64,000 nt of DNA from Ascidiella aspersa. Its lineage: Eukaryota. The notes beneath the pieces are model-generated. The model was not told the DNA's origin and did not search any database. It saw only the letters and a program-made list of their open reading frames with translations. Within the stretch, counting starts at the first letter, position 1. The number at the start of each line of letters is the position of its first letter. Positions 34,001-43,000 of this stretch are shown piece by piece. The translations under genes and the position numbers were made by a program. The stretch covers positions 7,874,001-7,938,000 of the forward strand of contig OZ004615.1 of the NCBI GenBank assembly GCA_963924565.1, written 5' to 3'.

Positions 34001-37000
34001 AAAATAACTTAAAAATGCACTTTTTAACGATGAGATGCAATTTAGTGGCTTTAAACACACAATGCTTTGACGCTTTCTGGCCTTCAGTATAGTGGTACAG
34101 CAGTATAGTGGTACAACATGGGCAGCGCCACGGACAACCATACCTTGCACATCTCCAGAACGTAGGAGCTGATGTGGCTGCCACCATCGTAGCCGCTCCC
34201 GTACCAAGAAACCACGATGTCATTGCTTCGCGAACTTTCGGCGAACGGTTTTCCAGGGGGGTCTGGCACGTCTGAAAAACGGAAAATCGCCAAAAAGTGC
34301 TAAAACAGTCAATCATTTTGTTCAGGAAACTGGAGTCCACATTTAGTATTATGGACCGAGCTCCGTCAGTTAAATAGTGTTTGAACAGGGAATGCGACTT
34401 ATAAACTTACTTTCGGATATAATAATAAACCATAGATTTCGCGTTTATTTAGTAATTTCAAAATCAATACTTGTACTCTGTTAGGGTAATCTGGCTGGCT
34501 TTACACAAACTTTCAAGTTTTTTTATTTGTTGCATTGGCTATAAAAAAAAAACTACACCAGGGGCCGGCAACCTTTCGTCTGCAGTGTGCAAGTTTATGA
34601 ATAACTCGCGTGCCAACCATTTTTCTATGTTTGATTTTGCACTGGCAACCTCCGGAGTCGGATAAAAGCAACCCCGACTCCGGCTAAAGTGTGCAATTTC
34701 ATCTAGTCGCGAGTCCGGCTCTGCAGACTCTACAACCTGTATTTCACCGATTTACGTAACTAAAATAAGATGGATATTCACAATCCACTCATAGGGGTCA
34801 TGGAAAATATGCCACCATATGCTATTCCACCTTAACAATTTTTTAACAGTTATTTATCAGTTTCGAAATAACCCTCTGTAAAAAATAAAATGTGTGCAAC
34901 CATTTAGTTGGTGCTAGTGTTAGTGATGTCATAATAATTTTAATGATGTTGTAGTGTTTCTTAAGGTGATATAACGTGCGCGGTCAATTATTTGGCGTGC
35001 CCTGAAAAATCATCTCGCGTGCCACTTTTGGCACGCGTGGCAGGGGTTGCCGACCCCTGACCTACACCAAAAACAACTAAAACGCCTTTACGGTTATACC
35101 TTTAGTAAGCAAAATAGAGAAAAGACAAATGGTTGGTCAGTGAAAGTATGCTATAAAATGTGGCTTTTAAACGACTCTTAAAACCACAAGAAATTAATGA
35201 AAAACATTGCGGTTTAATGGGAACGAATGACAGGTGTCGGTTGCTATTCACAGTTTTCTCACCAATAGTGTAAAGCACTGGAACCACAAAGCGCAAAATG
35301 CGTATTCAGCAAAGGAAGTAAGCGTCGTCAATCAAGCGGTTTGGGCAGCATGTCGTCGCAAGGTCAATGAACGTTTGGTTGTGGGCGCTAACCAAGTTAG
35401 GCTATATTGTGTTCTGGCCGTTATTTTGTAAAGCTAGCACGATTTAAACCTTTTTATAAAACGACGTAACTTGTTTGCAAATTGTAATGCCGCGACGTAT
35501 GACATACCCACCGGTTACTAATTTTGATGAATTTATTTTGTGACAACGGATGGAACATTTTAGGAAAATAAGTCTCTTCGAAAGTAGCCAGGTAAAACTT
35601 AAAGAACAGCACAACTGTAAATAGCTGATTTTTCGGCAAAGCAAAACGTTCGCTTTATATTAAACTTGGCATTAATTAAAAATATCCAACGGAATTATTG
35701 AGAAACCTTACTATACGACAGAACAATGCGCAAACATAGCTTAATAAGACGGGGAGTTAGTGGGTTCGTGCTGGGCCTTAAGTCACATGTTTTTATTCGC
35801 CATTTAGGCCATGTAAGATGCATTCACATGTCATGCATGCATTTAAGATCGTTTTCCGTATTGAGTTCGTTATTTTTCAAGATGCCAAATTGACTACACG
35901 ACTCACGATTGACTGCACGGTTCGAAATATTAGAGATACACCAACATTTTTGATGTGATTTCAGGATATCTAAGTTCGATACTGTCTTAATAGAGTTTCT
36001 TTAATATTTGATGTCAAGTAAAAAAGAATCAATTGTTACGTTTGACAAAAATACTAATAGAGAAAAAACATAAATCAAGCAAATGACATCTTTATCTTTT
36101 CAAGGCGCCCAAACTACAAAGCATAAAATATATGGGCAAAGCGCCTAAAAAAGTCTGCTCAAAACACAGAAACTGTTCGAAACTTACCCACGACTTTGAC
36201 GCTGACGGAAAATTGGTCGACGCCGGCGACGTTTTTGACTTGCAAGGTGTAACAGCCCGAATCATCCCTCTCGCTTTTGCCAATAGTAAGGGCCGAAAGT
36301 GTTCGCGTGCTCTCGATGTTGCACTGGCTACTGTGCTTGATCTGACAAAAACAAGGTGTTAAAAAAAAGAAAAACATCAATAAAATAACAAACATTATTA
36401 TGTTATTTACCTACAATCTTGCTGTGATTGTTAAGTTATAACTGAACAGCTTTGCAAGACGTGCGCAGTGAATTTATATATATTTTTAGTATATGCTATA
36501 CAGGTGTAGGTTGTATTGTCACAAATACTTGATTTAAAAAAAAAAATCAAATTAGAACAATTTGTCCTGTTTATAAAGGTCCGTTTAGCACCAGATATAT
36601 TTCACAAAGAGCTAAACGTTTCAGGCCTTTTACAGAGAGCTAAAAGTTTTCATTATATTTGACCCAAATAATGCCAAACAAAATACTTTACATGGCAAAA
36701 CAAATGCCAAAATTAACAAAGGGGTATCGTTAGGCAAAATCACTAAATTAAAAACCTAAACAGATGCTGCAACCCGGTCCTCCAGGCGTGTCCGGCTATT
36801 TCCAAGTAAAAAACAGTCAAAAACTTACCTCGTCACGCCCCTTGCGCCACACCACTGTCAGAGGTGGAGTCCCCTTTATTTCGCAGCACAGGCTGATGGG
36901 GTTTCCCCTGACAACGGTGATGTCTTCAGGTCCGTTGCTGATCTCGGCCGGCTTCACGGAGCTGGGCGTGATGGTGGACTTCTTCTTGGAAAACTTGGAG

Positions 37001-40000: not shown

Positions 40001-43000
40001 CTTGTTTGGATCGCGTCGACCGGGGGTGTCGGTGGGTCGACGTAGCCCTCCTCGAAAGGGTTAAGCGTCTCAGCCGGCTCAACTTTCTTCACAGTCGTAC
40101 CAGGACGAGGCCGCGCATTGGCGACGATGATAGGGGGTCGGGACGCTTCGGGCATCAGCGCGAACGCCCCTGCCACGTTTGCCGCCGACTCGAGAGCGCA
40201 AGCTGACGTCCGACGCTTCGGCGAGGTGGAATTTCGCCGATTGCGAAACACGTCGGCGTCCGGTTTATGCGTTTCGCGGCTTCCGGGCGACGAAAATGTG
40301 TTCGATCGTCTCTTCGTGCGCGCCGGGAACAAAAGTTGGCCAGATGGCGAAGGGGGCCTGGATCTAACTCGTGGTGGCCTCCTGGTTGTTGACGAATCAG
40401 AAGAGAGTGGTGCCCTCGGCGACGGAGGCTCGGCAACGTTTTCGACGCTCGACGGCGAGTTTGGAGTGCTTGGAGATCCTCTGCCGCAAGATGGGCAATG
40501 ACTGCAGTCGGCTCCTGTAGCGAGCTTGTGTACCCAGGTGATGTCGGTTTGCGTCACGGCGTCACTGCTGTTTTTTATCGGTTCGGTTGCGAGAGCTGTG
40601 ACGCTCGCCCTCGCCAGAGACGAGATTGTGTTTGGAGGCAGCACGGATCTCGCCGCAGGGTCACTTGAGGTCCTCATACGTCGAACATCCTCCGCCGCTC
40701 CCGAGAGCGCTCTCGCCTGCTCCCACTCGCTCCTCCACTTTTGCACACGGCACCGCTTGCACACCAGGTGCTTGCAAATAAAGCACCTCGCCTTCTGACG
40801 ATCGAGTTTTTCCGAGAGATCAAGCGGACCCTGACACCTGCCGCATCTCGAGTCCGGATTGCTGGTGTACTTGCGTCCCACCACCAGCGCTCCCATCCTC
40901 TTCTCCCGGATCAGATCCAGCCGCATCCGGACGATCCGCTCCTGTTCCTGTTCGCGCAAGTTTCGGTCACGGTTGAGGACGCCCATCACGTGATCGAGCT
41001 CGTTACGGTTCAGCTCAGATATGATGTTGTTCATTTTGTTGCTGTTGGTTTCCATTTTTGCTTTATTGCTTGCCTGTTTCGGTAAGATGACGTATCTTGG
41101 CTGGCTTCACAGGCAGCATTTCAATACGTTTTATTTTGTCTGGCTGCTATCCAGCCTCAAATGCAGCTTGGCCAGTTTTTAAGGTACCTTAAATCACAAA
41201 CTGTCAGACAAAAAAACATTGCTTAAAGCATAGTTTTGGCAAGTGGTAATATATAATTTTTTTGTTAGACGAATACAAGCGTTAAGGCTTAACAAGACAA
41301 GTTTCTGGATAGAGCTTGTCGGTTATAACATTCTAAGCCGCGTTCAGCAACTACATGAAAACATAATCAAACCCCGGTGACTTATCTAAAGTTTGAAACA
41401 AGCACTTTGTGTCACGTACTTCGGTATTGCAGTAAACTGCGAGGTAGACGTGTGCGGTCTTCACAGTTTGTTTTGTTAGCGGTAAGCTACATCCTAACAA
41501 TAACTAAATCGTGATCACTAAGTAGGTAACATGTCAAGAACTCTGACACCCATACACCCAACAAGCTAAAATTCGCATATAGCATAACATCGGTATACGC
41601 TGCGTTCACTTAAAATCGGTCACACTGTTGTATAAATACTTATTAGTTACTCACAAAACCTGATAGCTGTCCAGTACTGCTATTACCGCGATTTAGTAAG
41701 TTATGAAAAACCTAAACAGTAATCGAATAAGCTTGCGTCGCTTATGTATGTAAAATTAGATACTTCATGTAGTGAATTAAACAGAAGTGTCAACGACATG
41801 GTTTAGTTGGTTCAGTAGAGATACTAATATATAATAACGCATTTTGATTTCGGTTGCAAACGCAGCAGCTTGTAACAGGATGCTAGCCCTAAATATGCCC
41901 TGGCGTGGCATTACTGGTTCTTCCTGCGCTCAGCAATCAGTAATCACTCACAGCAGTTTAACATGAAATCAGTAACTCGAATAACGAATATAAACATCAA
42001 ATGACCCTTTTCCTACAACCGCTGTTGCGGATCGCGTTTTTTACTACATAAAACAACGAAAAAGTTCTTTAAAGGCAGGTAATATTGTAGTTTTTTTTTA
42101 ATTCTATGAATAGTGAGAAAACGCTTTGACTCCTAGAACTTCGTGCCTGTTATTTAACTTTATAAACCATCCCACTATGTGCATACGCAACTTGCATAAT
42201 GGCCCATAAACCACCATGAGATGAAGTAATTCGTTTTAATAGTAAAATCAGAAATGTTGGTCACTTTGTAAAAGCAGCCAACCATGTCCACACTTGACTG
42301 TTGGGCGTTGTTTTGCAATTGGCATGTTCTGTTTTCGAACGGGTGTCATGTGTCTTATATTGCTGATTGCAAAAGCACGTCTGTCAGTCGGCGAGAGATT
42401 AAATTATGTGAAAAAACGTCGCGACAACCATTACACAGGATGTTAGGAATGACGTTTTGGTGGTTTAATCTAAAACAATGGAAGCATCTTTTCGACCACT
42501 GCTGCACAGAGGGTTTCGCCAAGCCAAAGCGTCTATAACACTTTGTTAAACCCGCGGGGCGAGAGGCATTTTTGAAATGTTGATTATATCAAGACACCCT
42601 TGAAGCCTTCGCGTATTTTTTTGACAACCTTACACATTAATTACACGAATCTATGTATATAACGCTGAGAATTTGTAAAAGGTGAGATTGCTGTTCAAAC
42701 AAACAAAACCACTTTTTCAACTTGAGACAATACCAAAACTCGTTAGATCATATATATGATTTTAAAACAAAACAACGATGAGAGTTCATTAACCTTAGCA
42801 AATCACTTTGTCCCATATTTTTCATAAATACACCTGGCCTCAGATATAGCATAGCAGCTGTAATTGAACTGATAACTATATTGCGCGATTACACCCTTTT
42901 TAATCTATTTACCCTATTTAAAAACTAACGAGGAATTTATCGTCGACTGACCACGAAAACTAAATTTTACTGAATGTAACTCAGGCTAGTAATGTTGCCA

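Follow-up and report, generated by a model that had tools for sequence, protein, structure and literature searches.

A giant Rab-effector exon inside the myosin light-chain kinase gene of the ascidian Ascidiella aspersa and the kinase isoform it may supply

The myosin light-chain kinase (MLCK; MYLK) gene of Ascidiella aspersa raises a question in one of its introns: an open reading frame (ORF) of 1082 codons, on the sense strand of the host, which might be a gene of its own or might furnish the kinase with an alternative N-terminus. The window considered here comprises 64,000 nucleotides (nt) of contig OZ004615.1 (positions 7,874,001 to 7,938,000; assembly GCA_963924565.1); coordinates count from its first letter, and on the minus strand, which carries the gene, transcription runs towards lower numbers. 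A preliminary description of this DNA had proposed a chimera, in which a Slp/Slac2-type Rab-binding domain (RabBD) encoded by the giant ORF is spliced in frame onto the kinase half of MLCK. We find that the underlying observation is real and that its interpretation as a chimera is partly supported: the ORF belongs to a conserved family of predicted Rab effectors, its exon most probably ends in a conserved 5' splice site, and an isoform joining it to the kinase half by splicing of 37839 to 37028 is, on balance, somewhat favored.

The giant ORF and its split Rab-binding domain

The ORF extends over positions 37807 to 41055 of the minus strand, and its coordinates, translation, own ATG and location within the 11.8-kb MLCK intron were confirmed as first described. 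Its stop-free frame reaches 41106, 17 codons upstream of the ATG, and is closed by an in-frame stop at 41107-41109, 51 nt before the ATG (52 by the earlier count). Because this stop lies upstream and all relatives begin with a Met just before the first conserved helix (SHD1), the giant exon is taken to hold the true protein N-terminus. The GC content of the exon is 0.556; it falls to 0.30 over the 810 nt that follow and is about 0.37 in the flanking DNA. At third codon positions (GC3) it amounts to 0.59-0.76, against an intron GC of 0.30, and the value for the RabBD part (0.755) falls within the range of the MLCK exons (0.62-0.82). A chance ORF is excluded by the 1082 open codons, the raised GC and GC3 and the eight conserved relatives discussed below. 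The exon and its parts, with amino acid (aa) positions, exon-intron boundaries marked by a slash and model confidence given as predicted local distance difference test (pLDDT) values, are as follows:

41073 to 41202, minus strand: two acceptor-like sites 5' of the ATG, tttttttgtctgacag/ with its AG at 41202-41201 and gaaacag/ with its AG at 41075-41074
37839 to 41055, minus strand: predicted giant first coding exon, from the ATG (41055-41053) to the last exon base 37839; aa 1-1072 and the first base of a split codon
40735 to 41016, minus strand: RabBD part 1 (aa 14-107), a FYVE_2 match with the SHD1 helix and the first six zinc-binding Cys (C71, C74, C91, C94, C99, C102); pLDDT 70-86
38431 to 40734, minus strand: disordered loop (aa 108-875, about 770 aa) that separates the third zinc knuckle from the fourth, rich in S/A/P/R/E/T; pLDDT below 50 except at aa 413-425
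38353 to 38430, minus strand: RabBD part 2 (aa 876-901), a FYVE_2 match with W-x-C-x2-C (C882, C885) and the SHD2 motif KKSGDWF; pLDDT about 78
37846 to 37881, minus strand: conserved C-terminal helix (aa 1059-1070) directly before the predicted donor, found both in the family alignment and in the model; E1061 and L1067 nearly invariant
37807 to 37838, minus strand: read-through tail AKSILQKPD and stop (37807-37809), present in the protein only if the donor is skipped

Searches of the Pfam database recovered the FYVE_2 profile (PF02318) with 53.5 bits (cut-off 27.2; E = 3.3e-14), in two widely separated pieces: profile positions 2-90 correspond to aa 14-107 and positions 90-115 to aa 876-901. 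The first piece aligns to melanophilin (PDB: 2zet_C; 2e-6) and to Slp4, and the second to residues 95-121 of rabphilin-3A (1zbd_B), including its W-x-C-x2-C and SGxWF (KRSGAWF) motifs. The eight zinc-binding cysteines form four CxxC pairs (C71/C74, C91/C94, C99/C102 and C882/C885), the last of which lies about 780 residues away in sequence from the others, and all eight are invariant in the 10 sequences of the family alignment (A1). The same alignment shows W880 to be invariant, as are G896, W898 and F899 in the SHD2 motif (aa 893-899), with the Ser/Thr before the G-x-W-F core varying. The preliminary description was thus right in placing a Slp/Slac2-type RabBD at the N-terminus, as the profile match, the eight cysteines and the SGxWF motif attest, and had missed that the domain is split by a loop of about 770 aa.

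An AlphaFold model of the ORF, built on A1, is confident only at aa 1-58, 68-110 and 877-901, and more weakly in the helices at 413-425 and 1059-1070. Comparison with 48,161 representative chains placed melanophilin from the complex with Rab27B at the top (2zet_D; Z = 7.5, 122/141 residues aligned over model positions 7-907), followed by rabphilin from the complex with Rab3A (1zbd_B; Z = 7.1), with unrelated chains at about Z = 4. Both top matches span model positions 7-907, and the predicted structure thus reassembles a single Rab-binding domain from the two halves across the loop, at modest Z values. A feature search of the N-terminus likewise placed it among the RIM and rabphilin clusters. 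By analogy with such domains the exon product would bind GTP-loaded Rabs of the Rab3/27/8 type.

The loop itself is not featureless. Three LNPF motifs occur in it (aa 332, 363 and 378), each with acidic residues after it, as does a helix that is conserved, RFLxMAGV (aa 413-425); loop motifs are common to the relatives in A1, and NPF motifs are also present in them. These NPF motifs are candidate ligands for EH domains of the EHD/Eps15 type, here within a putative Rab effector. The second RabBD half is followed by a Ser/Thr/Pro-rich tail. No C2 domain was matched in the ORF or in the eight relatives scanned with Pfam, and no C2-like exon was noticed among the downstream minus-strand frames, which were inspected by eye only. 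Membership in the Slp family (Slp1-5) is ruled out, as there are no tandem C2 domains.

Relatives and the conserved exon boundary

A full HMMER scan of the ORF against 1.84 billion representative proteins yielded 23 matches, none longer than 1191 aa. Eight distinct relatives of 737-1150 aa (P0001-P0006, P0008 and P0009) constitute the family, so that the conservation on which the preliminary description had made its proposal depend is indeed seen. All eight come from ENA, Logan or JGI assemblies as ORFs without a name, no named orthologue was found in NCBI or UniProt, and the next matches beyond the family are vertebrate Slp4 RabBDs (about 1e-7). The N-terminal FYVE_2 domain was detected in all eight and as a two-stretch match in seven, P0001 showing a single stretch over profile positions 1-91; the W-x-C-x2-C and G-x-W-F residues are kept throughout in A1. 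Further homologue searches, started from the whole ORF, residues 1-130 or A1, were empty, which carries little weight; those with the whole ORF and A1 scored only the best 8000 candidates by shared words, likely low-complexity ones.

Examination of A1 revealed three regions common to the relatives: 1) the N-terminal domain; 2) its second half; 3) the short C-terminal helix, which ends at G1073. This column holds glycine in 9 of the 10 rows and, in the remaining one, a serine consistent with AGT. Beyond it every relative has a dissimilar tail of 3-30 aa and then a stop; in 8 of the 9 distinct rows hydrophobic residues are more frequent in the tail than in the 100 aa before it, and from their composition these tails mostly look like translated AT-rich intron. 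In the A. aspersa DNA the Gly1073 codon GGT straddles a potential phase-1 donor (G/GT). The sole relative seen as DNA, on a JGI metagenome contig (L005), reads GTTCCAG/GTGGTG at this place, where the window reads GTTCCAG/GTGCAA. The end of conservation at the G/GT codon and the unchanged GTTCCAG/GTG in L005 argue for a spliced rather than a terminal exon; most probably a conserved 5' splice site, in phase 1, closes it.

The alternative that survives this best, and that we nevertheless regard as unlikely, is a stand-alone intronless nested gene: its transcripts would begin 5' of 41055, continue unspliced past 37838 and be polyadenylated in the MLCK intron, and translation to the stop at 37807 would give a 1082-aa Slac2-like effector without a kinase; such a form may also coexist with a spliced one. 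The ORF is complete, with its own ATG and stop, and the database relatives are all ORFs of similar size with no annotated chimera among them. Against this stand the end of conservation exactly at the G/GT codon in every relative, the tails that vary in length and sequence and are mostly intron-like, and the heptamer at the GT, identical in the two DNA copies despite a protein identity of 30-41% (depending on the measure). The database entries are, moreover, probably plain ORF calls made with no splicing model, and their length is therefore no argument against splicing.

The partner of the predicted splice site

A splice site at the end of the giant exon calls for an acceptor, and the following features, all on the minus strand, bear on its choice:

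48820 to 49081, minus strand: upstream MLCK immunoglobulin (Ig) exon with the phase-1 donor G/GTGAGT at 48820/48819, which normally uses the 37028 acceptor
37833 to 37841, minus strand: predicted 5' splice site CAG/GTGCAA, phase 1, with the Gly1073 codon GGT made by G/GT
37029 to 37838, minus strand: predicted 810-nt intron (GC 0.30) containing tandem repeats of 31-32 nt and four AATAAA/ATTAAA signals
36829 to 37028, minus strand: shared MLCK exon encoding a linker and the first half of an I-set Ig domain (Pfam I-set, 4.4e-6), with the phase-1 acceptor tttcag/AT
21895 to 36410, minus strand: rest of the kinase half, with the second Ig half, fibronectin type III (FN3) at about 34299-32813, kinase at 31184-26450, calmodulin (CaM)-binding segment at 25891-23979 and telokin-like Ig at 22992-21895

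Read by hand, the donor CCAG/GTGCAA has its last exon base at 37839 and its intron from 37838, ten codons and the stop before the end of the ORF, and is in phase 1; so is the acceptor tttcag/AT, whose first exon base is 37028. The upstream MLCK exon ends in GGC G/GTGAGT at 48820/48819, again in phase 1, and its intron to 37028 measures 11,791 nt. Joined to 37028, the donor at 48820 or at 37839 alike gives G+AT, an Asp, followed by LAIQSN. All of these readings, including the shared phase and the sequence at the joint, agree with the preliminary description. For a functional donor that lies within a host intron, in the sense orientation, the expected partner is the next host acceptor, here 37028. 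A script that tried all 44 AG sites in the 810 nt in phase 1 found a long open frame from 37028 only, the others running into a stop within 33 codons; as 37028 alone keeps the frame open, there is no competing acceptor over this distance.

These observations argue for a chimeric isoform with an alternative first exon, to which we give somewhat better than an even chance. In it the giant exon would serve as the translation-initiating first coding exon of the conserved Rab-effector family, and its phase-1 donor would be spliced across 810 nt to the MLCK exon that follows. The product would consist of RabBD, disordered region, Ig, FN3, kinase, CaM-binding segment and Ig, without the Ig/DFRxxL actin-binding N-terminus of the long isoform. 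The 5' end of its transcript would come from a promoter of its own or from a spliced leader, the acceptor-like sites at 41200 and 41073 being candidates for a 5' untranslated region (UTR) intron or for leader addition. Through GTP-bound Rabs of the Rab3/27/8 type, a Ca2+/calmodulin-dependent kinase for the myosin II light chain would then be brought to the surface of secretory or recycling vesicles.

Several points weigh against the chimera, and some of them in favor of the stand-alone gene. No annotated combination of FYVE_2 and a kinase, the architecture that the preliminary description had suggested seeking, was found among the 1.84 billion representative proteins, and none of the 10 matches scanned with Pfam (23 matches in all) contains a kinase domain; all members of the family stop right after the exon boundary. 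The linkage of the family exon to MLCK is seen in this genome only: on L005 no MLCK Ig or kinase exon occurs on either strand within 10 kb upstream or over the 1.7 kb that remain downstream to the contig end. The agreement in phase would by itself arise by chance in one case of three. The four AATAAA/ATTAAA signals at 37405-37256, about 400 nt past the ORF stop, would permit termination without splicing. Finally, the donor GTGCAA lacks the consensus A at +4 and G at +5 and is no strong site; the donors of the host gene are diverse, however, including GTAAGT, GTGAGT, GTTAAC, GTTAGA, GTCGGC and GTGATT, and GTGCAA is therefore within the range for this gene.

On the same metagenome contig, an opposite-strand Ig-like match at 6263-6352 (E = 7e-4) was rejected, as on reading it does not resemble an Ig exon. 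At the contig end (14929-15105, minus strand) a frame resembles, by eye, the C-terminal end of a Tc1/mariner-type transposase, and in that species mobile elements may have lengthened the intron that follows the L005 exon.

A further alternative accepts the donor and changes its partner: a multi-exon nested gene, in which the giant exon joins a short private terminal exon, within the 810 nt or further down between MLCK exons, adding a few residues, a stop and a poly(A) site of its own. The apparent conservation of the donor suits this scheme as well, several AGs in the 810 nt would add 15-33 codons, and poly(A)-like signals are present. None of the frames so opened looks coding, in a stretch with a GC of 0.30 and tandem repeats, and no segment of the window besides the ORF convincingly matches L005 3' of its ORF. 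A private coding exon of at least 40 aa inside the intron is excluded, there being no minus-strand stop-free stretch of that length between 37838 and 37069. We accord this scheme an outside chance. The repeats form two tandem arrays at 37137-37447, with AAGTCA-rich units of 31-32 nt in 2.5-3.3 copies, beside the four poly(A)-like hexamers of the intron.

The remaining schemes concern the 5' end. There is a slim chance that the giant exon has no promoter of its own, a leader being added at the acceptor at 41200 or 41073 inside the MLCK intron of the host pre-mRNA, with the exon then cis-spliced to the kinase exons; if so, one primary transcript would give rise to both an actin-anchored and a Rab-vesicle-anchored Ca2+/CaM-dependent myosin kinase. 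A giant internal exon of the MLCK pre-mRNA is very improbable: acceptor-like sites do lie upstream of the ATG, and the AG at 41062-41061, read by hand, is phase-1 compatible with the 48820 donor and would keep the frame, but its context is purine-rich and poor, the stronger acceptors at 41200 and 41073 bring in a stop before the ATG (making a truncating or poison exon), all relatives have their Met at the same place, and the RabBDs of known effectors are N-terminal.

The host gene, comparable systems and biological meaning

The chimera presupposes that the host is an MLCK gene, and by its domain content it is a genuine smooth-muscle-type one. In an exon-by-exon Pfam search three exons matched Pkinase and four exon halves matched I-set; the best PDB matches of the host exons are MYLK4 (2x4f, 5e-15) and twitchin; and a CaM-binding segment with RRKWQ (the RRKWQKTG motif) can be read across two exons. 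Two exons sent to Pfam as FN3 gave no match, and their identity as FN3 is by eye only. With this qualification the order Ig, FN3, kinase, CaM-binding segment and telokin stated in the preliminary description stands, as does its placement of the giant exon downstream of the DFRxxL actin-binding exons. The latter belong to a minus-strand series of Ig exons from 63732 to 48820.

Further features of the host deserve mention in their own right. Four DFRxxL motifs (at 55806, 53689, 52611 and 50544, minus strand) and two DFRxE variants (about 51100-51470) lie in exons between Ig domains; in this non-vertebrate chordate they recall the actin-binding repeats found in the smooth-muscle MLCK of vertebrates. 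The splice donors of the gene are, as read from domain boundaries, unusually loose: three of them (57497, 49520 and 33559, minus strand) have a pyrimidine at +3, of which GTTAAC and GTTAGA follow Ig exons and GTCGGC lies within FN3. The telokin-like exon ends in CCAG/GTGTATGA, readable as Gly-Val-stop or as another phase-1 donor. Just past it, at 20650-21250 (minus strand), there is a stretch with a strong AT skew (0.186) and overlapping open frames of 120-135 aa in which Cys, Pro and Ser abound; it may represent a repeat or UTR. Downstream on the same strand about 20 further Ig and FN3 exons form another long series at 1124-18378, which may be a continuation of the MLCK gene or a distinct muscle gene rich in Ig domains.

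Among known Rab effectors the giant exon most resembles the Slac2 proteins (melanophilin/Slac2-a and MyRIP/Slac2-c) and Slp4/granuphilin, with which it shares an N-terminal RabBD composed of the SHD1 helix, two zinc sites of eight Cys and the SHD2 SGxWF motif; melanophilin in complex with Rab27B (2zet) is the best match by both sequence and structure, and Slp4 is also among the best. As in Slac2 there are no C2 domains in the giant exon, and the predicted product follows the same general logic, in which a Rab effector links a vesicle to actomyosin. The zinc finger, unlike that of Slac2 and Slp4, is interrupted by the loop, and the coupling predicted here would act through a light-chain kinase, that is by regulating myosin II, instead of through direct binding of a motor. 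Outside the RabBD the sequence showed no similarity to melanophilin or MyRIP, including their myosin-Va/VIIa- and actin-binding regions, which are poorly conserved and make this weak evidence. Rabphilin-3A, Noc2 and RIM have the same FYVE_2-type fold, to which part 2 (rabphilin 95-121) and the structural match already point; they differ in having C2 or PDZ domains, in the length of the loop (about 15 residues in rabphilin) and in the downstream partner.

On the kinase side the nearest parallel is vertebrate MYLK, in which long MLCK, short MLCK and telokin arise from internal promoters with private first exons. The arrangement proposed here would equally consist of nested transcription units in one gene that share 3' exons, and the host has the vertebrate layout of an N-terminus with Ig domains and DFRxxL motifs, Ig-FN3-kinase, a CaM-binding RRKWQKTG and a C-terminal Ig. 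The known private first exons of vertebrates, in contrast, add few residues and no targeting domain. A literature search met no description of an MLCK first exon that exceeds 1000 codons and encodes a Rab-binding domain, and nothing relevant on RabBD with MLCK, on Ciona Slac2 or on alternative promoters of ascidian MLCK.

Irrespective of how the exon is spliced, the family shows that a zinc finger of the Slp type can accommodate, between its last two knuckles, a conserved loop of 400-800 residues that bears motifs, and the NPF motifs of this loop suggest a link to endocytic or recycling proteins with EH domains. If the chimeric isoform is real, it would represent a new domain architecture, FYVE_2 with Pkinase, built from known modules. 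MLCK and myosin II act in exocytosis and granule transport, and an isoform that exchanges the actin-binding N-terminus for a Rab-effector domain would be a genetically encoded way to bring MLCK to the vesicle in one chordate lineage.

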